From assembly GCA_964036045.1 (NCBI GenBank), contig OZ038378.1:194246001-194310000 (forward strand): DNA of 64,000 bases, read 5' to 3'. Source of the DNA: Eutreptiella sp. 'Long Island Sound 2002'. Lineage: Eukaryota > Protista > Euglenida. Below the pieces are notes generated by a model. It made no database searches. It was not told the DNA's origin and worked only from the letters and a program-made list of their open reading frames with translations. Below, piece after piece: positions 3,626 through 63,552 of the stretch. The stretch's first letter is position 1; every line of letters begins with the position of its first letter. A program made the translations under genes and the position numbers.

Positions 3626-3877
3626 GTGCTCCCCCCCACCGGCCTCGCCCGACAGGGGACTGGGGCCCCTCCCGTTCAATCTATATTTTCACATTGACCT
3701 GGTATATTTCTTAATGAGCTGCTTTAGTTACTTACACCATCATCAACAAACAAAAAATGTGCCCGGGCGCCTGCAGCAGTGCGCCCCGCCACCGCCCACG
3801 CCCGATGGGAGGCTGCCACCCCACCCGTTGCTTGCCTTTGCCCGAGCCGCCGCTCCGCTTGATCCGGTTCTGGCGGC

Positions 3878-3950: not shown

Positions 3951-6900
3951 TCACCAGAAATATGATCCCATAAGCACACAGCCACATGGCACACATGCAT
4001 CTACTACGCCTTCTGATTTCAGAGCCTTAATGTATGTTACCCCCCTACACTCTTTGAAACTAAACAGCGACAGACGGGGTAAGGCCGAATGAGTGCCATG
4101 CTTTGCAGCCCAGTCAGCTCGCATGTGACACAGTGAATGCAGTCCGCATTTATGGACGACTGCTTTATATTGATCCAGGTTGTTCACTAGAGTCGGCAGC
4201 AAAGGACAAGCACACAAGTGACCCACGGAGCTAACCGCAACGCCTCGCTGTATTTTACATAGTGGAGCACCCCAACCAAGAAGGGGACACGTGCATTGAT
4301 TGGATTTCGCAGTACTGCTGGACTAATGGCTGGAATTGTCTATGGCGGGGACATTCAGTCTATCAGAACCGACCATTGATCCCCCTTTAGTGCCTCAGCG
4401 GTTTAAGGACTGGTCCAATAGGGGGCCAGTCTTCACACAAGCCTGCGTGTTGAGTTGTGGGATTGGGTTGTGCATGCATGTGTGCTTTTATGCATATTGT
4501 TATCTGCTCCATTAGCTCGAGCTCCCCTGGTCTGTGATCAATCGGGACACGACTGGCACTTTCAATGGGCCTGGAACTGTTCCTTCCAATATTCCTGAGT
4601 TGCATTATTCTTCTTCATTTGCATTTACATCTGAGTTGCTGTATTGGGTGAGCATGCGAATCAATGATTCAAATGTCGCATGTTCATTGGTGCTATTAGA
4701 GTTGTTGCCACATTGGGCTGTGGTTTTGGATTACCCTGTGCAAAGGGGTTTCATACTCATGTAAGTGCCTTTCCCTGAAGGGTGTGCCAAGAACACACAT
4801 TGTAGGTGGGTTGGCATGGGCTCAAACCCACCTTCTCTGCTTCTTTTTATTATCACAAGATCTGTCAACAGCTCCAGCAGCAGCAAGCTTGGCAGCCATC
4901 TGTGATGTATGCAACGCCCTCATTCCCACATACCCGGAACAGAACTCAGGAGAAAGTTTGTGGGACGCCCTCAAGGCGTGTCAGTTGCATCCCGCTGCAT
5001 CCCCTGGTGACAGTGTACAAGTCTCAAGTACACGTCCCACCATCCTCTGACGGCATGTGGGTCCTCCACACAGGATAATATATGTTGCACTTTAAGTGCC
5101 ACACAGAGCCTGTCCGTCTGACCGAGCACTTATGAGGCACGGGTAAATCTGAGCAAAAAAAAAGTACATGGAACAGAACTCAACTCCTGTAGATTTGATT
5201 CACTCGCTCTTCTTTCAGAGGCTCATACCCTACCCCCTCCCTCGCGAGGAGATTGTCTATGGCGGGGACATTCGGTCAATCAGAACCGACCATTGATCCC
5301 CTCGTGAGGACAGCACCCTTGTCAGAACAATATGGGTGCTGTTTCTGCAACTTTTGAAACCATTGGCTTTCGTGCCCCCATTCCCCCCCCCCCCCCCTCC
5401 CTAGCCCCCCCCCCCCAGGGGGCCTCCTACCAACAGTTAGTTGGGGGGGGTAGTTGGCGTCCAGAACCGAGGGGTCACACCCCCGGGACTGTGCTGCACT
5501 GTGATGATACACAGTTGAAGTCATGAATCTTCCATCCTATGCTCCTGTATCCCATGGGGGTGCGTATCCCATGGGGGTGCCCTTAGCGCAGTGTGGGCGC
5601 AGTCTCTGAAGGGAACGTGGTGACAGACAATGTTCATCTTGTTCATCGGAAACAGCAACGTCGGGTTTTAGGGGAGGGGGCAAGAGACAACAGGCGGGAG
5701 CGGCGGGACGAGGGGCTCCCGAAGCTCCGCGGCAGGCACAGGGGGTCCCACATGACCCTCGGACCTGTGATCATTTTTCACAACGGGGATGAACAGGGGG
5801 CAGCCGTGCTCCTCGGTTGCATGGCCCATAGAGGACGGGGTGGGGGGATGACCCCCCCTCCTCCCCCCCTCGGGTCGGGCAGAGCAGCAAGTGGCCCGCC
5901 CCTGGTCAGGGAGGGGAGGGCAGCTTACGAGCCCAGGGTCAGGGCCCTGAAGGGCAGCAGGAGCAGATACCTGACCCCCTGATTGCAGGTCCTTCCCTTG
6001 CGCCCGCGCTCAAGGGGTCCATGGGGAGGATTCCCCCTGGGGCCCAGCACGCACGCCACGGGCCAGCCCAACCACCAGCCCCCAGCAGCGGGGGGAGGGG
6101 AATGAAGCGACAAAGGGAGACCCCTCCCCCACGGGATACCCGGCAAGCGCCCACGCTTGGTGCGCCCCGCGCAGCTGCACGGCCACGCGGGCACGGAGGT
6201 GACATAAACACCCCCCCCAGAGAGGCTCTGGCCTAGGCGAGGGCCGCATGGGGGGGAGAGGAGCCCTCTCTCCACCCACCGACCAGTGCGGGGGATCATC
6301 TGTGGGCACCCCTCCCTCTCTTTTTAGCACGCGGCCCGTAGACCCATGCAGGTCGCCCTCTTTAATATGGCATTCCCCCCTCCCTTGCGCCGAGTACACC
6401 CTGGGTGAAGCTCCAGGAGGTCAGGCAGCGGGCCTAGCTCGCCCCAATCTGCGTACACACAGCGTGCAGGACCTACAATGTCTGGCCTGTTTCCACATCT
6501 TTTGGAATTATGGCATTCAGTGGTCCTTTTTTCCGGTTGTCTATGAAGGGTTTTCTGTGATTTGGGGCTGAGGATGATCCTTTGGGGTTGCCAAGACAAC
6601 ATCTGGTCACCCTCTCGTTCACCTCCGTCCCTAGTCTGGCCTAGTCTGGTGAACCAAGCAACTCCTTGTCGGAGCAGCGGGAGGTGCTATTTTTGGCAAT
6701 TCCAGAAGGTCCAGTGAGCTGCGCTTGGCAGGGACCTTTCAGGCAAGCTGACGGGCTGATGGGTGTACCGGTAACAGGGAAAATGCTCCAACAACAAAGG
6801 CCCTTGGCGGGTAGCCGCAACAGCTAGGCCACTTCCCATGCCGGTGCTCCTGTGCATGCTCATGGCCATTCCCATGACCACAACCCAGGGAGCGAAATCT

Positions 6901-14200: not shown

Positions 14201-16188
14201 GTGTTCTACTTCCCACCTTCGCCCTCTTCTGTGTGTCACCGATCACTCCACAGCAGTGCGCTCTGCCCCAAGCGAATAGTGACCCTTTGTGCCTGATTGA
14301 CCAATTGTGCCTGAATGTCATCCCCTCCCACTCTGATAGTGTATGACAAGCAACCTGCTGATTCACCTCGGCCTTCAATCTTCACTCCGCTGTCTTTTTC
14401 AGCCTACAGTCATTGTGCCTCACGCACACTGGGAAGCCTACGGGCGTGGCAGTCTCCCACTGCATAACCTGGTTTCAGACTCAGCTCATCCTCACTACGT
14501 GTCAGATCCGCTACCACAGTCATTTGTGGGATCATTGTAGCACTGGACAGCTCTGAACCTTGATTCCGAGGGGTCACCTCGAGGACTGTGAAGTAAGCAG
14601 GCTACGCCAGCTCATCTTGGTCTGAGCCAAAAAAAAAAACATTGCATATGCTAAAAAGCTAGGGCAACCGTTACCACCCCCCACCCCCCAACTGTGAGCA
14701 CCAAAAGCGCTGAAAATGATGGAAACACCATCTCGCGCTCCAATTTTAAGCTGTCAACAAGAAGAGGTGCGTTCAAGAAAGTCAAAGAGCAGATGTCAAG
14801 AAGTTGGGAAGCGAATGATGGGATGTTGCATGTAGTTTGGAACAACCATTGGAGCATGGACCCTATGCTCTTGGCCGTCCCAACGCGCCTCTTGTGGTAT
14901 ACAAACCCCTGAACAACCACCGTAGCAGCTAGGACCAACGGGAGGTCCGCGTGACCTTACATGCTATACCCTGACAACACCATCCTTTTTGTCCCTTGTA
15001 CCTTCGATAACCCCACCAACAGGGGCATGGGGAAGGTCTCTCTTCAAGGTGCCTGGCCGAAGGCAATAGAACTTCTACAACCCCAGAGATCTACACTACT
15101 TCTCTTACGGCACCTTTTTTCGGTGGTGGTGTGCACTGTAAGGAGTACAGCTTCATGCCTGGTCATGGCCGTACCCCCCCTCCCCCTTGCGCAAGCACGG
15201 CCTTGTCTAAGCACAGAGTGGTGAGAACAGTGATTTCCTGCCGGTGGGATACCTGGGGTGACGGCCATCATCGGATTATGGCTAAGCATAGAGTGGGCGT
15301 TGAAACGCTGTTTTTAGGAAATTTTGGGACCACTGTTTTTGTCGTCCCAGATGTAAGATGGGGTTTAAAACCATTCTACCACACATTACAACCCGTGATT
15401 CTTAGCCAGTCCCGATATTCCCCTTCCACAGCCTGTCACCATCTGCATCTTCTGGAAATGGGCGGTCATGTGCGTTTGCCATCATGTGTGTCGCACGCGA
15501 GCATAGTGTTGTCTAAGCACCCGGTGGCCGTTGAACCGCTGTTTAGCCTGCTTTTTGGGACCACGGCTGTGCTTGCGCAGGGGGAGGGGGGTTACATTCA
15601 ACTAGAACCACTATCCTACAAGACCTTTGGGTATTTGGCCTACAGTCTGTAATCCTGCTCCTTCGCGGGGCAATACATAGTTGATGGCTTAGCCGACATC
15701 AGTGGTCAGGGCTGTTTGCCACTCTAGCACGTGGCCCTGGTGCAGCCCTAGTGCAGCAAGGAATCCCCACTGTTCGGGACTGTATGATGCCAATGTACAG
15801 GTCAAGCGTCAGATGATTTTGAAAATTGCACCACCTTGGAAAGCAGTTTTACGCTGCAGGTCTGTGGAACTTTCTGCGTTGGTTGCAGCCATGCATTGTT
15901 GCACATTGATGTGTTGTCCAATGTATCATGGGTCACACCACTAGGCACTTTGGAAGTGCACTCCAACCCTTTGACCGTGCACCCAATGAGGAGTTCATTG
16001 CACTGCAGTTGACAACCACCTTTCCTGGGCATTTCTCCAATATAAACCTGCAAGATCTGCCCCACCAAACTCAAGCCCCAACCTGCCCAAGAGCGAAATG
16101 CACACTTGAACAAGTACAGGAGACAGTGGCTGCTTTCAGCATATCCCTGAGTCCGAACCCAGATACAAGCCATGTTTTTTACGTGTTC

Positions 16189-47419: not shown

Positions 47420-48757
47420 ATGTTTTTTTCGTGTTGCATGCATTTGTGGGTTGAACGAAGTTGCTGCACAACATTTGCACATGTTGTCTCCAGTTCTCAT
47501 AAGAGCTTATTTCTTGACGCACCGATGTCGACTCGCTCAGCCACGCATTCCATGGCCAGTGACCTCATGTTGGCACAAGAGTACTGTTTCTGGAGAGACA
47601 ACTACGAGGTGGTGATTGTGAAGAATAGACGCCGAAAGTCGTCGCAGCGCACTGAGCTGGTGCAGTTGAATCGCGTCACCTCATGGGGCGCGTACCAAGC
47701 AAGCGTAATCATGCACATGGCCCAGACCCCACAGAACGGCAGTCTGCACATCTTTCGCAAGGGAATCGCCCCAGAGTACGAAGATCCTTTGAATCGGAAT
47801 GGCGGTCTCTTTAAGCTGACGTTTCAAGCCACAAGTTGTGCTGCGGATGCGTTCACAGTGCTGTGCGGTTCCTTCGTGCTGGGGCACCTCCCGAACCACG
47901 TGGCAGTGAATGGGGTAACATTTGCCAAAAAGGGGACGAGTTGTGGTCTGAAGGTGTGGGTTGGGAGCAGGGCCAAGCAGGTGGTGGCCCACGTTCAGGA
48001 GTGGTTCACGAAAGAATTGGATGGCTTCATCTCGTCCTGTCTGTTCTGCCCCATTGTGTCGCTGCTGACCTCCATTCAGAAGAAGCAAGCTGCACTGTGT
48101 GTGCCACCACAGCCCATCCAGCAACCACAAGGCCCAAACCCTAGAGACGCCATCGGGATCCTCAAGGTACCACCACCACCCCCAGTGATGATGCCCGCAG
48201 TCACCACCGCAGGCAACATGGGAATCATCCCTTGGGACTTGGTGCAACAGCCGGATGTCGCTGGCAGCCCAAGCCTGTTTCTTCTCAACGAAGCATCGTT
48301 CTCGAGTGATGGTAGCGACCCTGACACGGCTGCGTCTGGTAGATCCCTGGGATACAGCAGTCAGGCCTCCACTTCCGACGTCAATGACCGAGCACGCGAT
48401 TCGCAGCTGTTGTCGCTGTCCCGAGACGAGTGTATACTGGAGCAGGCCGTTGAAGAATGTGTACAGGATGTCCAACAAATGGAGGCATCGGGTCCTCAGG
48501 TGCCTGCCGCGCTTTCAGTCGTCCACAATGTGTTTGAGGATGATGCCATGAGGTGCCTGATGAGCAGGTCTCGGTACTCACAAGCCTGGGCTGTAGAAGC
48601 AGCGGACGCCGTGAGAAAGCGGCTGCAAGCCACCGCAGAGCGGTGCCGTGCATTTCCTCGCGATTTTATGGAAGTGCGGGTCGTGCAAACCTCTCCGCAA
48701 GCCCCATGCCGTACATGCTCTGACGATTCTGACGAATGTATGGGCAGATGGGGATAG
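47420..48757 (+). CDS. eIF4E: Atypical eIF4E-family protein, copy 3 (likely start 47525)
   Basis: 445-aa ORF, near-identical to copies 1 and 2. Confidence 0.88.
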   Translation: MFFSCCMHLWVERSCCTTFAHVVSSSHKSLFLDAPMSTRSATHSMASDLMLAQEYCFWRDNYEVVIVKNRRRKSSQRTELVQLNRVTSWGAYQASVIMHMAQTPQNGSLHIFRKGIAPEYEDPLNRNGGLFKLTFQATSCAADAFTVLCGSFVLGHLPNHVAVNGVTFAKKGTSCGLKVWVGSRAKQVVAHVQEWFTKELDGFISSCLFCPIVSLLTSIQKKQAALCVPPQPIQQPQGPNPRDAIGILKVPPPPPVMMPAVTTAGNMGIIPWDLVQQPDVAGSPSLFLLNEASFSSDGSDPDTAASGRSLGYSSQASTSDVNDRARDSQLLSLSRDECILEQAVEECVQDVQQMEASGPQVPAALSVVHNVFEDDAMRCLMSRSRYSQAWAVEAADAVRKRLQATAERCRAFPRDFMEVRVVQTSPQAPCRTCSDDSDECMGRWG

Positions 48758-50970: not shown

Positions 50971-51483
50971 ATGCATAGGCGTTTTACAAAGTTGCCCCTG
51001 CAATTCTTATCACATCCTTTACGGTCAGCAGTGTCTCCACACGAGGCTGGCAGCTGCAAGGGACGCACAACATTTGCACAAGTACTGACGCTTTGGACGA
51101 CCTTGCTTACACAAGCGATCCCACAAAATTTGTTGGCTGATGTCAAAACCTTTACCAGCACCCCTCATGCCGCTTTCCTACAGGCACCATCCTGTATTGC
51201 AACACCCCCCAGCCACCCCCCTCGCCAGCCCCTACTGATGCACTCCTAGCATGTTTATCAGATATCCTACAACAAATGCAGCAGCTTCACGTACCCAGTG
51301 AACCGTGGTCTCAGGGCTGGGTACTTCCTATCCCACGCCCCATTTACAAGGGCATTGATTTTTCAAATGTCCCAGTTGTTTGTCCACGTTGACGACAATA
51401 CTATTGTGGCTGCATCCCAGGCCCAGTTGCAAGCTGCCCTCTATACCGAGTGCATGTTTTGGACCCCCAAATATGAGCGCTGA
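50971..51483 (+). pseudogene. Non-LTR RT fragment, disrupted
   Basis: RT motifs; first of three tandem copies. Confidence 0.7.
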
Positions 51484-52137
51484 TTCTTGCACCGGAAAGG
51501 GCATTCCATCCCAAATAGGACACTATTCCGTGCAGTTTGCGTCTCGTCCCGCCCCATTGGCTCCACGAGGCATGTATCACAGCATGCGCCTGGAAGTACA
51601 GGACTGCCATGGATCAACGTGCCCGCCCTGTGTGCAACTGCAACAGGGCCTGTGGTTCTGATGTCACTGTCCCTTCCCTCCACAGGCCTTGCCATGCCTC
51701 AAATGCCCCTTACCCCGGGCCCGGGTGCCACCACACATGTTCCCCCCCCCCCCCCCAATGCCCCACCAAACATAACCGTCTTGAAACAAGCACATGGCTG
51801 TTGCATGGTTTGGAAGAGAAGGTCTGTCTGATCTGTGCGTTCGAACCTGATTGCGGTGGTGTTGATGGATCGCCTCGTTGGGCATATGGTTGAATGATGA
51901 AATGTTTGTGTCTGCTGGTCAACAAGCTTTTAAATTCAAGGGAACACATCTCATAGGAGGTCGGCTGAAGAAGTGGAAGCAGCACATATTGGGAGAGCTC
52001 TGACTGGTGCACTGAACACAGGATTGATGCCCTCCTCCTCCTCCAATGCCAAAGGGAGAGGGGGCTTCCTTTGCATCTCAGTTTTGCTCCGTCACTGAGG
52101 ATGACAAGTTGGCGCAGACCCCTTACTAAACTGTTAA

Positions 52138-52674
52138 ATGCCGAAAACACACACAGTATATGCTTTTTACAAAGTTGCCCCTGCAATTCTTATAACATCC
52201 TTTATGGTCAGCAGTGTCTCCACACGAGGCGGGCAGCTGCAAGGGACACACAACATTTGCACAAGCACTGACGCTTTGGACGACCTTGCTTACACAAGCG
52301 ATCCCACAATATGTGTGTATTTGTTGGCTGACGTCAAAACCTTTACCAGCACCCCTCATGCCGCTTTCCTACAGGCACCATCCTGTATTGCAACACCCCC
52401 CAGCCACCCCCCTCGCCAGCCCCTACTGATGCACTCCTAGCATGTTTATCAGATATCCTACAACAAATGCAGCGGCTTCACGTACCCAGTGAACCGTGGT
52501 CTCAGGGCTGGGTACTTCCTATCCCACGCCCCATTTACAAGGGCATTGATTTTTCAAATGTCCCAGTTGTTTGTCCACGTTGACGATAATACTATTGTGG
52601 CTGCATCCCAGGCCCAGTTGCAAGCTGCCCTCTATACCGAGTGCATGTTTTGGACCCCCAAATATGAGCGCTGA
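52138..52674 (+). pseudogene. Non-LTR RT fragment with internal TAG
   Basis: RT motifs; second tandem copy. Confidence 0.7.
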
Positions 52675-53327
52675 TTCTTGCACCGGAAAGGGCATTCCAT
52701 CCCAAATAGGACACTATTCCGTGTAGTTTGCGTCTCGTCCCGCCCCATTGGCTCCACGAGGCATGTATCACAGCATGCGCCTGGAAGTACAGGACTGCCA
52801 TGGATCAACGTGCCCGCCCTGTGTGCAACTGCAACAGGGCCTGTGGTTCTGATGTCACTGTCCCTTCCCTCCACAGGCCTTGCCATGCCTCAAATGCCCC
52901 TTACCCCGGGCCCGGGTGCCACCACACATGTCCCCCCCCCCTCCCCAATGCCCCACCAACCATAACCGTCTTGAAACAAGCACATGGCTGTTGCATGGTT
53001 TGGAAGAGAAGGTCTGTCTGATCTGTGCGTTCGAACCTGATTGCGGTGGTGTTGATGGATCGCCTCGTTGGGCATATGGTTGAATGATGAAATGTTTGTG
53101 TCTGCTGGTCAACAAGCTTTTAAATTCAAGGGAACACATCTCATAGGAGGTCGGCTGAAGAAGTGGAAGCAGCACATATTGGGAGAGCTCCGACTGGTGC
53201 ACTGAACACAGGATTGATGCCCTCCTCCTCCTCCAATGCCAAAGGGAGAGGGGGCTTCCTTTGCATCTCAGTTTTGCTCCGTCACTGAGGATGACAAGTT
53301 GGCGCAGACCCCTTACCAAACTGTTAA

Positions 53328-53879
53328 ATGCCGAAAACACACACAGTATATGCTTTTTACAAAGTTGCCCCTGCAATTCTTATAACATCCTTTATGGTCA
53401 GCAGTGTCTCCACACGAGGCTGGCAGCTGCAAGGGACACACAACATTTGCACAAGTACTGACGCTTTGGACGACCTTGCTTACACAAGCGATCCCACAAT
53501 ATGTGTGTATTTGTTGGCTGACGTCAAAGCCTTTACCAGCACCCCTCATGCCGCTTTCCTACAGGCACCATCCTGTATTGCAACACCCCCCAGCCACCCC
53601 CCTCGCCAGCCCCTACTGATGCACTCCTAGCATGTTTATCAGATATCCTACAACAAATGCAGCGGCTTCACGTACCCAGTGAACCGTGGTCTCAGGGCTG
53701 GGTACTTCCTATCCCACGCCCCATTCGCTTTGGCGCGCCTCACAAGGGCATTGATTTTTCAAACGTTACAGTTGTTTGTCCACGTTGACGACAATACTAT
53801 TGTGACTGCATCCCAGGCCCAGTTGCAAGCTGCCCTCTATACTGAGTGCATGTTTTGGACCCCCAAATATGAGCTCTGA
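53328..53879 (+). pseudogene. Non-LTR RT fragment with internal TAG
   Basis: RT motifs; third tandem copy. Confidence 0.7.
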
Positions 53880-59700: not shown

Positions 59701-60784
59701 GCACTCAAACAGCGCCCTTGGCAGATCAGGAGGGCCATTTATTGTCATTTGTTAACTCCTTCTTTGCATACAAATACTTATTGCTCTGGTGTTGTGCAAT
59801 GCCACATTTGTCGCTCGTTCTTTGGGGCAAAGAGAGTGCCTTCTTTCATTTGTAGTGACAAAATTGGAGGTGGCACCCAGGGGCACCACTGTTGGTTAGG
59901 GGGTCCATAAAAAAGTGGAATGCGACTTGCGTCCGAATTGACGTATAGTAGCAGCTACAGGCGAACCAAGTTTGGCCCACCACAATGCTAGCGGACCTAA
60001 AATGGTGCTCTCAGGACCAATATGCATTGGCCAATGATTCAACGTATGCTTGTGTCATCGAATGCTTGCCTAATGCTTGCGGATATTTCGGTCCTGTAGC
60101 CACCAACTCATCCCGCAGCCATGCAATCACACTGAGATGCAAAACAATTGGTCTCAGAGATAACACCATTTGGCAGAGGGAGTGGTGATTGCACAAAGCA
60201 AACATTGCATATGCTAAAAAGCTAGGGCAACCGTTACCACCCCCCACCCCCCAACTGTGAGCACCAAAAGCGCTGAAAATGATGGAAACACCATCTCGCG
60301 CTCCAATTTGAAGCTGTCAACAAGAAGAGGTGCGTTCAAGAAAGTCCAAGAGCAGATGTCAAGAAGTTGGGAAGCGAATGATGGGATGTTGCATGTAGTT
60401 TGGAACAACCATTGGAGCATGGACCCGATGCTCTTGGCCGTCCCAACGCGCCTCTTGTGGTATACAAACCCCTGAACAACCACCGTAGCAGCTAGGACCA
60501 GCGGATTTACTCTAGTAGAAGAAAAAAGGGAGGCCCGCGTGACCTTACATGCTATACCCTGACAACACCATCCTTTTTGTCCCTTGTACCTTCGATAACC
60601 CCACCAACAGGGGCATGGGGAAGGTCTCTCTTCAAGGTGCCTGGCCGAAGGCAATAGAACTTCTACAACCCCAGAGATCTACACTACTTCTCTTACGGCA
60701 CCTTTTTTCGGTGGTGGTGTGCACTGTAGGGAGTACAGCTTCATGCCTGGTCATGGCCGTACCCCCCCTCCCCCTTGCGCAAGC

Positions 60785-60810
60785 ACTTTCTGAGTGTCTA
60801 TTTTTTTTCG
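60785..60810 (+). other. Full-length euglenid spliced-leader exon sequence in genomic DNA
   Basis: ACTTTCTGAGTGTCTATTTTTTTTCG is the 26-nt Euglena SL as I recall it. It is followed by a 14-nt UTR and ATG, not by a GT donor. Confidence 0.92.
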
Positions 60811-60824
60811 ATTTTATTTCGTCC

Positions 60825-61727
60825 ATGGCTGAGCTGTGGTTCCGGAGGAGGGCGATCCCTCTCTGGAAAGAAGTTCGGTCAATAGCCGAAGCCACGATGG
60901 AGAAAGAAGTGGACGCTCGGATTGTGTCCAACTCACTGACTACACCAACACTCCGGCAGCCGCTTCCGGACAACGGCGGGCCGCTGGCGGACTCTTCCAA
61001 GAGCATCCCACGAAGCATTGACAGGAGATGGCGGATGATACCAGGGGACGGCAGGATCGTCGGCAAGGCAAATGCCAAGGCCGACAGCCGGCCTCACGCT
61101 GATCTACTGCCGCAGAAGAGTTCTGACAAAATTCCCAATTTTATGCTGCAGTTTGGATACCCATTTGCACGGGACCCCAAAAACCCTCGAAGTGGGCACG
61201 GAGATCCTGAGCCCAATTCAGCTTTCAAGTTTGGTGACCATGACGTGCAGCACAATGCAGGAGACAACATACCTAATGAGCTGGAAGTGCAACGCAATGC
61301 AGGAGGCAACATTCTTAATGAGCTGGAGGTGCAGTGCACTGCAGGAGGCAGCATTCCTAATGAGCGAGAAGCGCAGCGCCATGCAGGAGGCAACATTCCT
61401 AATGAGCTGGAAGTGCAGCACGATGCAGGAGGCAACGTTCCTAATGAGCTGGAAGTGCGGCGCAATGCAGGAGGCGACATTCTTAATGAGCTGGAAGTGC
61501 AGCACAATGCAAGAGGCAACATTTCTAACGAGCTGGCAACAAGCCCCGCGCCCTGTCGCGGAGGGTCTCACTGGTGTTATGCCACCGGTGAGAACACGGA
61601 CCTATTCCCCTCCAAGCGCCCCGTCTTTGGATGTGTGAAGGATGGGTTTGACGTCATTATGAAGATCAGTAACACCCCAACCGACTGCCGCGACAGCCCA
61701 CAGGATCCGGGGGGAGGATTCAAATGA
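60825..61727 (+). CDS. 300-aa unknown protein with seven 14-aa repeats (retrogene)
   Basis: ATG 14 nt after the SL and an open frame to TGA at 61727, with repeats EVQHNAGGNIPNEL. No family recognised. Confidence 0.7.
   Translation: MAELWFRRRAIPLWKEVRSIAEATMEKEVDARIVSNSLTTPTLRQPLPDNGGPLADSSKSIPRSIDRRWRMIPGDGRIVGKANAKADSRPHADLLPQKSSDKIPNFMLQFGYPFARDPKNPRSGHGDPEPNSAFKFGDHDVQHNAGDNIPNELEVQRNAGGNILNELEVQCTAGGSIPNEREAQRHAGGNIPNELEVQHDAGGNVPNELEVRRNAGGDILNELEVQHNARGNISNELATSPAPCRGGSHWCYATGENTDLFPSKRPVFGCVKDGFDVIMKISNTPTDCRDSPQDPGGGFK
61242..61535 (+). repeat. In-frame 42-bp tandem repeat x7
   Basis: Units start at 61242, 61284, 61326, 61368, 61410, 61452 and 61494. Confidence 0.95.
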
Positions 61728-63130
61728 TCAATATTGAGAGGACTAATTGATTGTCTTGGACATGCGCGTAGTTGAGCCCCGTTGCTCGGTTGCATCTGGA
61801 CACCTGTCAGGAGCAGTGGCCGAATGCGGCTCCAGTGGAAATGTCACCGGCACTTCAGGAGTTAGATGATCAGTTTTGAGCCTGCTTCTTTTCAACATGC
61901 CGAGCCAACCAGGCAGTGAGTGACCAGTATATATAGATTTTACACTTTGTTTGATTACAGGCAGCCGAATTTGGTGCTTCAGGGCCCCTCCGGCCCTGAC
62001 CCCACTACCCGCGGTTTCTCTAAGTGTTGGCAACGACCTGTCAGCCTTCGCTCTCTCTGAGTGTCGCTGACGTTTGGGCAGGGGCGTAAAGCTTCCTATG
62101 GCCCGCTGTTGGATTCCCCAAGACCGAATGAGTGTCGGGGAGCACTGTAGAGCCTCTGCAACGCTTTTAAGCTTCACTTGTGGGTCTCCAGCCGGGGGAA
62201 CTCGGAAGGCATGATATTACATTATGTCAAGGTGCAATGATATCGAAGTTGAGATCTTCATGTTGAGGATCGCTTGAGGTAGACAATTTTGAGGTGCTAT
62301 AGTATTGTTGTTTCGTAAGCAGAGCAGACCTGTGAGCAGGTACACAAAGGAACATTCCAGTCGTGATTAATGCACAATACGAAGAACTGAACTTTGCGTG
62401 GCAATGACCGGTCGCCTGTGACACGGGGGCGTTCGGTAGCCAAGTATCCGTTGCTTCATGGCCCCAAGCAGAAGCCACAGTCAGCAGCCTCTGGAGTGGT
62501 ACAGAACTGGTTTGCGCTGCAGTGCAGCGAGGAAAAACACTGAACTATGTGGTGATGACCATGCGCCTGTGACACGGGGGCGTATGCGAGCCCAGTATCC
62601 GTTGCCTCATGGCCTTGCGCAAGCACGGCCTTGTCTAAGCACAGAGTGGTGAGAACAGTGATTTCCTGCCGGTGGGATACCGGGGGTGACGGCCATCGTC
62701 GGATTACGGCTAAGCATAGAGTGGGCGTTGAAACGCTGTTTTTAGGAACTTTTGGGACCACTGTTTTTGTCGTCCCAGATGTAAGATGGGGTTTAAAACC
62801 ATTCTACCACACATTGCAACCCATGTTTGTTTTGATGTGATTCTTAGCCAGTCCCGATATTCCCCTTCCACAGCCTGTCACTATCTGCATCTTCTGGAAA
62901 TGGGCGGTCATGTGTGTTTGTCATCATGTGTGTCGCACGCAAGCAAAGTGTTGTCTAAGCACCTAGTAGGTGTGAACCGCTGTTTAGCCTGGTTTTTTGG
63001 GACCACGGCTGTGCTTGCGCAGGGGGCGGGGGTTACATTCAACTAGAACCACTATCCTACAAGACCTTTGGGTATTTGGCCTACAGTCTATAATCCTGCT
63101 CCTTCGCGGGGCAATACATAGTTGATGGCT

Positions 63131-63552
63131 GTTCAAGTGTGCATTTCGCTTTTGGGCAGGTTGGGGCTTGAGTTTGGTGGGGCAGATCTTGCAGGTTTAT
63201 ATTGGAGAAATGCCCAGGAAAGGTGGTTGTCAACTGCAGTGCAATGATTTCCTCATTGGGTGCACGGTCAAAGGGTTGGAGTGCACTTCCAAAGTGCCTA
63301 GTGGTGTGACCCATGATACATTGGACAACACATCAATGTGCAACAATGCATGGCTGCAACCAACGCAGAAAGTTCCACAGACCTGCAGCGTAAAACTGCT
63401 TTCCAAGGTGGTGCAATTTTCACAATCATCTGACGCTTGACCTGTACATTGGCATCATACAGTCCCGAACAGTGGGGATTCCTTGCTGCACTAGGGCTGC
63501 ACCAGGGCCGCGTGCTAGAGTGGCAAACAGCCCTGAGCACTGATGTCGGCTA
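63131..63552 (-). other. 422-bp inversion relative to the other units
   Basis: Reverse complement of 15690-16111, with 2 bp lost at the breakpoints. Confidence 0.92.

Follow-up and report, generated by a model that had tools for sequence, protein, structure and literature searches.

A spliced leader in genomic DNA marks a probable young copy of a Euglena retroposon derived from a cyclophilin messenger RNA

Background

Retrocopies that carry a spliced leader (SL) in the DNA are a hallmark of dinoflagellate genome evolution, and DinoSL-tagged retrogenes were reportedly described in dinoflagellates by Slamovits and Keeling in 2008. Two mechanisms known from other organisms are also relevant. Stringent long interspersed nuclear elements (LINEs) recognise their own 3' end. 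They and the elements that depend on them have a tail in common, terminate at a fixed base with no need of poly(A), and show regular duplications as well as 5' truncation, e.g., UnaL2/UnaSINE1 and R2. Template-switch chimeras such as human U6/L1 and messenger RNA (mRNA)/L1 are known, and the R2 reverse transcriptase performs end-to-end template jumps. The recycling of dinoflagellate mRNA into DinoSL-tagged retrogenes has been documented (PMC6050394, PMC5585692, PMC12014239), and leader relics have been used to count rounds of retroposition (PMC6050394). The subject of this report is a 64,000-nt stretch of contig OZ038378.1, here termed the window, in which the segment at positions 60787–62612 very probably represents a young insertion of a multi-copy, non-autonomous Euglena retroposon that arose from a cyclophilin mRNA and was inserted by LINE-driven target-primed reverse transcription (TPRT).

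Among known phenomena, mRNA recycling in dinoflagellates comes closest, and in mechanism the nearest cases are tail-sharing LINE-dependent retroposons and template-switch chimeras. As in dinoflagellates, a leader that is added post-transcriptionally is found in DNA directly before a gene, and tandem or truncated relics record the rounds. However, the phylum and the leader are different, and whereas dinoflagellate recycling involves thousands of ordinary genes, the window copy belongs to one amplified family, whose tail derives from a LINE and which has precise duplications, a definable partner LINE and copies that differ in a neutral pattern. The eel pair UnaL2/UnaSINE1 provides a similar case of a non-autonomous element that has the 3' end and stem-loop of a partner LINE, a fixed end, duplications and 5' truncation, but the head of the family described here is a trans-spliced protein-coding mRNA with its leader and not an RNA polymerase III (Pol III) promoter of the tRNA, 5S or 7SL type. 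The family is not a short interspersed element in the strict sense, which has a Pol III promoter or a small-RNA head, and Rfam shows no tRNA, 5S or 7SL family in the window. With template-switch chimeras the window copy shares a full-length RNA copy on the 5' side and a 5'-truncated LINE 3' end in one duplication; it differs in that it has no poly(A) and that the acceptor RNA has a LINE-like tail, and its origin in a single event is putative. L1-type processed pseudogenes are likewise RNA-derived, have a target-site duplication and are dead on arrival by codon pattern, but the window copy lacks the poly(A) tract of a classical processed pseudogene, its target is a C-run and not T-rich, and its family has amplified over several generations.

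Full-text literature searches, with most subscription journals outside their coverage, returned no account of retrocopies with a leader tag from Euglena or other euglenids, and novelty is provisional. In the chromosome-level genome paper (PMC11252322; 2.4 Gb, LINEs 1.5%, unclassified repeats 32.7%) the term 'spliced leader' is absent.

Results and discussion

The insertion and its empty sites

Alignment with three sister units of the same window gives an insertion of 1826 bp (positions 60787–62612), plus a 14-bp target duplication. A window search places the 14-mer CCTTGCGCAAGCAC at 60773–60786 and 62613–62626, and as single copies at 15185, 33622 and 46132. At these last three positions the aligned flanks are uninterrupted, i.e., they are empty sites; the event is therefore a precise insertion of 1826 bp with a duplication of 14 bp. 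The insert is a composite inside one duplication. It consists of a retroposon unit (60785–62465) followed by a 147-nt 3' fragment of a LINE (62466–62612), and all three empty sites lack both parts. Comparison with the empty sites shows that the C-run and the 14-mer are pre-existing target sequence and that the 5' junction has no added bases. The first two bases of the leader (AC) coincide with the end of the left duplication, and the CC at the 3' junction is attributable to insert or target alike. An A-run was looked for at the 3' junction of the window insert and none is present. The window copy is 99.35% identical over 1680 nt to the family copy at locus L020, versus ~97% between the host sister units around the site, therefore the insertion is younger than the unit duplication. 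As judged from these identities, it is a recent event that followed the duplication of the host units.

The 26-mer ACTTTCTGAGTGTCTATTTTTTTTCG at 60785–60810 is the sole match in the window, even at 3 mismatches, and the chance expectation is none. It is the Euglena gracilis SL, letter for letter, as printed in PMC6242988, and the SL primer used in PMC5654406 has the same 26-mer as its core. No GT splice donor follows the leader at 60810; the sequence continues with a 14-nt untranslated region (UTR) and an ATG at 60825. An SL-RNA gene, or any other family, was not found by Rfam across the whole window. The structure is that of an SL-relic retrogene, i.e., a full leader fused to a 5' UTR and an open reading frame (ORF) outside an SL-RNA gene. 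The leader region displays a spike in contig depth, and some contigs have only the leader in common with the window.

These data agree with much of a preliminary description of the locus. That description had recognised the exact 26-nt SL with a short UTR and a 300-aa ORF, and the leader is identical to that in PMC6242988; its assumption that the 26-mer is the leader of this organism is in accord with the published E. gracilis sequence. The flanking duplication and the site that is empty in three sister units are confirmed by alignment, with the duplication fixed at 14 bp, and the junction sequences uphold the overlap of AC with the target and the absence of 3' poly(A). The proposal that a leader-bearing, 5'-complete RNA was reverse-transcribed and integrated recently is supported by the identities to L020 and between host units given above.

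An assembly chimera or contamination with complementary DNA (cDNA), in which case the insert would be absent from the DNA of the organism at this place, is extremely unlikely. No listed contig bridges either junction, but contaminating cDNA would not create a precise 14-bp target duplication, eleven other copies with duplications of their own sit on contigs of 0.1–4 Mb, and a contig from sequence run X2 reproduces the left flank with a base at 60729 that is specific to the filled unit.

A dispersed family with a fixed 3' end

In one assembly, ERZ25074135, a protein search shows 15 related ORFs, which lie on large ENA contigs. Two of the 90% clusters have 27 and 54 different sequences, on different contigs, and the family may be estimated roughly at 100 or more ORF variants. 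Twelve places (L020–L031) were fetched and the boundaries were read for 12 family copies, the window copy included. The full-length copies all start with the SL or with stacked or truncated SL relics (9/9). Every one of the 12 copies ends at the base homologous to window positions 62463–62465 (...CTTCATGGCC, often then CC), is bounded by direct repeats of 6–15 nt that start with CC, and has a C-run at or just before the upstream repeat. The direct repeat comes immediately after CATGG in 11 of the 12 and 2 nt later in one. In neither the window copy nor any of the 11 others does a poly(A) tract separate the 3' end from the duplication. Copies L024 and L029 are 5'-truncated, with starts homologous to 61058 and 61592 respectively, and each has its own duplication. 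The copies are 95–99.5% identical, and the differences consist of multiples of 42 nt in the repeat and two small UTR indels. In read-through ORFs of further copies, the SL is translated after proline runs, which are C-runs in the DNA. Dispersal in many copies, duplication of the target site, a 3' end that is fixed and the presence of 5'-truncated members are together characteristic of a LINE-dependent retroposon.

Two 5' variants are present. An 82-nt segment (60825–60906) is found in the window copy, in L020 and in several 300-aa ORFs, and the common part begins at 60907. The other variant (L021–L028, L030 and L031) has only 16 nt from the ATG (ATGGATCATGCATCAC) in place of the 82 nt. RNA contigs of both variants exist.

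The preliminary description had regarded the insert as one recent retrocopy of an ordinary mRNA of the host that arose through template switching, or through break repair with RNA or cDNA as template, and not by TPRT. Such an origin would fit the intact SL, the lack of poly(A) and the microhomology seen at each junction (AC and CC). However, the unit is multi-copy, all copies end at one base in a LINE-like tail, the CC duplications of 6–15 nt occur regularly at C-runs, 5'-truncated copies are present and no intron-bearing parent was found, which makes this explanation very unlikely. An ordinary intron-containing host gene is not supported as the source, which is a multi-copy retroposon family whose sampled full-length copies bear the leader. 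The missing poly(A) and the microhomology had been taken to point away from TPRT, and that argument is not sustained where 12 of 12 copies have the same end in a LINE-like tail and CC duplications, and two are truncated. The suggestion of a euglenid gene-recycling route stands in spirit, in view of the stacked and truncated leader relics in sister copies, but what is seen here is one amplified family. Transfer of an existing copy from another locus at the DNA level, by gene conversion or ectopic recombination, would have many near-identical donors to draw upon, but homology with the other copies breaks off precisely where the SL begins and where the tail ends, and the flanks are duplicated target and not donor flank; the probability of such a transfer is close to negligible.

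Repeated rounds of retroposition

In copies L025 and L026 the SL is followed by TGTCTATTTTTTTTCG, which corresponds to SL positions 11–26, i.e., the older leader is cut exactly after an AG inside it. Copies L021 and L031 have three leader relics in a row. Relics that are cut after the internal AG lead to the conclusion that DNA copies were transcribed, trans-spliced again and re-inserted. TGTCTATTTTTTTTCG is what remains once a new leader has been joined at the internal AG of an earlier leader already present in the DNA. The sole candidate for an older relic in the window copy is ATTTTATTTCG at 60811–60821, which has a 10/11 match to SL positions 16–26. It is suggestive only of a decayed leader; sister copies L025 and L026 have clear leader relics at the equivalent place.

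Copy L026 has 12 extra bases (positions 3789–3800, nine G and CAC) between the upstream duplication and the SL, the sole case in 12 copies. This filler may be an untemplated or cap-related addition by the reverse transcriptase.

Homology of the 3' tail to a LINE

The tail of the family (62386–62465) is ~80–82% identical to the last 66–78 nt of a LINE at locus L021. This LINE (L021 561–4142) is 3.6 kb, 5'-truncated, and interrupts a family copy at a position homologous to 61160–61167; it has its own duplication of 6–8 nt, which also starts with CC. Its ORFs show zf-RVT (E 1.8e-8) and RNase H (E 6.7e-23), and there is a 213-aa ORF without a Pfam match. Sequence searches of the PDB with the LINE ORFs gave RNase H matches only, which assign the LINE to no clade. 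The family and an autonomous LINE of the same genome are thus homologous at their 3' ends. A stem-loop common to the family tail and the LINE tail is predicted, in which three pairs are changed on both sides and are still paired. The shared tail stem-loop is supportive but not conclusive, as the model compares two lineages only.

The segment downstream of the tail, at window positions 62476–62614, matches the L021 LINE at its 3' end with 91% identity. Locus L031 has a 234-nt fragment that is 96% identical to the same LINE 3' end, and the window segment matches this fragment at 89%. At L031 a 5'-truncated LINE fragment (5857–6170) is situated at a C-run and has its own 14-nt duplication, CCCCCACTTTCTGA; it interrupts the first SL relic where two family copies stand in tandem. 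L031 and L021 look like paralogous copies of one tandem pair. Contig depth rises ~30- to 100-fold over 62462–62649, relative to the insert body, toward the 3' end, and in 83 contigs of run X1 the match ends after 62614 and is followed by diverse sequence. The last ~147 nt are therefore a very high-copy element that ends at the 3' end of the insert.

The LINEs that adjoin L020, L026 and L028 were considered as partner and rejected; they have no nucleotide similarity to the L021 partner LINE, and proximity is no evidence. A scan of metagenome contigs with an 18-mer of the tail gave 19 unrelated loci and only a 29-nt chance match, in L005.

Origin of the composite

A full-length 5' RNA copy together with a 5'-truncated LINE 3' end inside a single duplication is the structure of a template-switch chimera. 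The junction between the unit and the LINE fragment is present in 0 of the 11 other copies. Three routes to the composite can be considered. In route (a), cDNA would be made from 147 nt of the 3' end of a LINE RNA, followed by an end-to-end template jump onto the 3' end of the unit RNA, in one TPRT event. In route (b), the template would be a read-through transcript of a source copy that was already trailed by a LINE fragment. Route (c) consists of two separate hits at one spot, either the unit first and then a 147-nt truncated LINE at the CC behind the tail, or the reverse, with the second event leaving a duplication of only 2–4 nt. That the LINE targets C-runs beside family copies is in favor of route (c), as with the L031 fragment in an SL relic with its 14-nt duplication and the L021 LINE in a family copy, and so is the CC(CC) at the junction of the two parts. 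A single 14-bp duplication brackets the whole composite, however, with no second duplication of the usual 6–15 nt, and the three sister sites are empty of both parts. Two insertions would thus be an unlikely origin, and of the three routes (c) appears to be the least likely.

A decayed cyclophilin reading frame

Pfam analysis of the 300-aa ORF shows Pro_isomerase at profile positions 76–150 of 159 (E 1.6e-6), i.e., the C-terminal half of the domain only. The window ORF does not have a complete Pro_isomerase domain with the FHR(V/I) active-site stretch. The canonical cyclophilin P0014 (JGI name: cyclophilin) and its genomic twin P0045 show homology to the window ORF from 61131 on. Both have YYNGIHFHRV directly before the start of this homology and one 14-aa unit, compared with seven in the window ORF, and their C-terminus differs from that of the family due to a frameshift in the family. 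Copy L025 retains 186 nt of the domain core, which the other aligned copies do not have.

Variable sites among copies amount to 12.1%, 8.0% and 12.6% at codon positions 1–3 and to 9.7% in the UTR. An excess of third-position changes was sought among the copies as a sign of purifying selection on the ORF, and none was found. The copies differ in a neutral pattern, and the ORF is open because the copies are young and not because of any demonstrated selection. No intron-bearing parent gene was found; the immediate sources are other family copies.

P0045, on a 648,856-nt ENA contig, shows the canonical cyclophilin as a continuous 362-aa genomic ORF. The residues before its ATG (HTQGLLFLDI) can be compared with the SL translation LSECLFFFD, and all differences are reachable by one-base changes. 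The canonical cyclophilin host gene P0045 may itself stand behind a decayed leader.

Transcripts of the family

Four sequence runs, all consisting of contigs, were compared with the window. Run X15 is recorded as RNA, and by depth the others fit RNA better than DNA. The insert body is present in contigs at ~97–99% identity, with systematic differences from the window. RNA contigs of 519 and 713 nt from X15 are family transcripts, and the two UTR indels of the copies are also seen in RNA contigs. One 1110-nt contig follows 61382–62465 and then diverges. Another contig represents a canonical cyclophilin transcript that matches 61131–61196 and 61607–61705 at ~89%, without the repeat region in between.

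Metagenome and metatranscriptome runs from estuaries and sediments (X7, X10, X11, X15 and others) have 17–46% of the words of the window stretch. Family contigs of 97–99% identity in these runs indicate that Euglena-like cells with the family were in those samples.

Proposed mechanism

Target-primed reverse transcription, and not break repair, is the most likely mode of insertion from a comparison of the copies. A fixed end in a LINE-like tail, CC duplications of 6–15 nt at C-runs and 5' truncation constitute the signature of LINE-driven TPRT, and poly(A) would be absent because the element recognises its own 3' tail. In the proposed sequence of steps, the LINE enzyme would nick the G-run strand, and the terminal GG of the primer would pair with the terminal CC of the tail; pairing of a nicked G-run primer with the terminal CC would fit the constant CC at the start of the duplications. 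The enzyme would recognise the tail stem-loop without need of poly(A), and the RNA would be copied up to its capped leader. The 5' end may then be joined via a microhomology of 0–10 nt (AC in the window copy). The site of insertion lies within the terminal inverted repeat of a small element that resembles a miniature inverted-repeat transposable element (MITE).

Several points weigh against insertion of a family member by LINE-driven TPRT. The link between LINE and family consists of 66–78 nt at ~80% identity and a fold modeled in two lineages, and the LINE was seen in 5'-truncated form and with no endonuclease. Neither junction is bridged by any listed contig, and the runs compared consist of contigs and not of raw genomic reads. 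Contigs carry the L020 bases and not the window bases at 60854 and 60894; these demonstrate transcripts of the family and not of the window copy itself. Finally, independent LINE fragments at C-runs beside family copies in L031 keep routes (b) and (c) alive.

Target site and neighboring sequence

A MITE-like element of ~420 bp, bounded by an inverted repeat of ~30 nt, provided the target in its left arm. In a sister unit this element spans 15171–15595, with arms at 15171–15205 and 15562–15595 (C-run and TTGCGCAAGCAC). In the filled unit it is represented by 60759–60786 and 62627–63037, split by the retroposon in the left arm. The possibility that the flanks are copies of the tail repeat, an idea taken from an upstream TCATGGCC and C-run motif, was rejected; local alignment compared with shuffles showed nothing beyond the 14-mer, and the C-run belongs to the MITE-like inverted repeat.

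By sister-unit position, the target is ~1.3 kb upstream of an eIF4E ORF. The eIF4E ORF in the sister unit (47420–48757) is continuous, encodes 445 aa and matches Pfam IF4E (E 2.2e-13). The eIF4E counterpart of the filled unit is expected just past the end of the window. A 423-bp segment at 63130–63552 is inverted relative to sister units, with opposite-strand matches at 16112–15690 and 47059–46637 (98.6%). Tandem repeats of ~1180–1190 bp are found within the 12–18-kb sister units at 51128–53808, and also at 2146, 19235, 20414, 39044 and 40224. The coordinates of the features of the filled site are listed in Table 1.

Table 1. Features of the filled site and its surroundings (window positions)
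Feature	Positions	Strand	Basis
Target C-run and left 14-bp duplication (60773–60786)	60759–60786	+	Empty sites carry the same C-run and one 14-mer
Complete 26-nt spliced leader in DNA; AC overlaps the duplication	60785–60810	+	Unique in window; published SL
14-nt 5' UTR	60811–60824	+	Sequence reading; possible older decayed leader relic in the first 11 nt
300-aa ORF, decayed cyclophilin derivative	60825–61727	+	Pfam Pro_isomerase; canonical cyclophilin homology from 61131
Seven tandem 42-nt (14-aa) repeats inside the ORF	61245–61536	+	Repeat search; alignment of copies
3' UTR of the retroposon unit	61728–62385	+	Colinear in all copies
LINE-like 3' tail of the unit	62386–62465	+	Every family copy ends here (...CTTCATGGCC[CC]); predicted stem-loop common with LINE tail
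147-nt 5'-truncated 3' end of the partner LINE	62466–62612	+	91% to L021 LINE tail; very high copy; ends exactly at the duplication
Right 14-bp duplication; first CC ambiguous with element tail	62613–62626	+	14-mer search; empty-site alignment
Right inverted-repeat arm of the MITE-like host element	63004–63037	-	One-mismatch minus-strand copy of the 14-mer at 63011–63024

Conclusion

The window copy is the most informative member of the family that has been read, as three unoccupied versions of its insertion site are preserved elsewhere in the window. The empty sites show directly that the C-run and the 14-mer are the target, that nothing was added on the 5' side and that copying reached the very first base of the leader. 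Comparison of the family names the likely machinery, i.e., a LINE, a shared tail and a C-run target, and accounts for the missing poly(A). A vague 'recycling route' is thereby turned into a testable system of a LINE and an mRNA retroposon. It is suggested, tentatively and as a possibility that is somewhat doubtful at present, that in euglenids an mRNA that acquires a LINE 3' tail could become a self-propagating 'messenger retroposon', and that leader-tagged retroposition could be a general route of gene duplication in Euglena, parallel to that in dinoflagellates. Every new copy would carry a leader relic with it, and this relic behind a C-run would provide a pyrimidine tract and an AG, i.e., a ready acceptor for trans-splicing, so that copies inserted anywhere within transcribed DNA could receive a new cap and be mobilised again.

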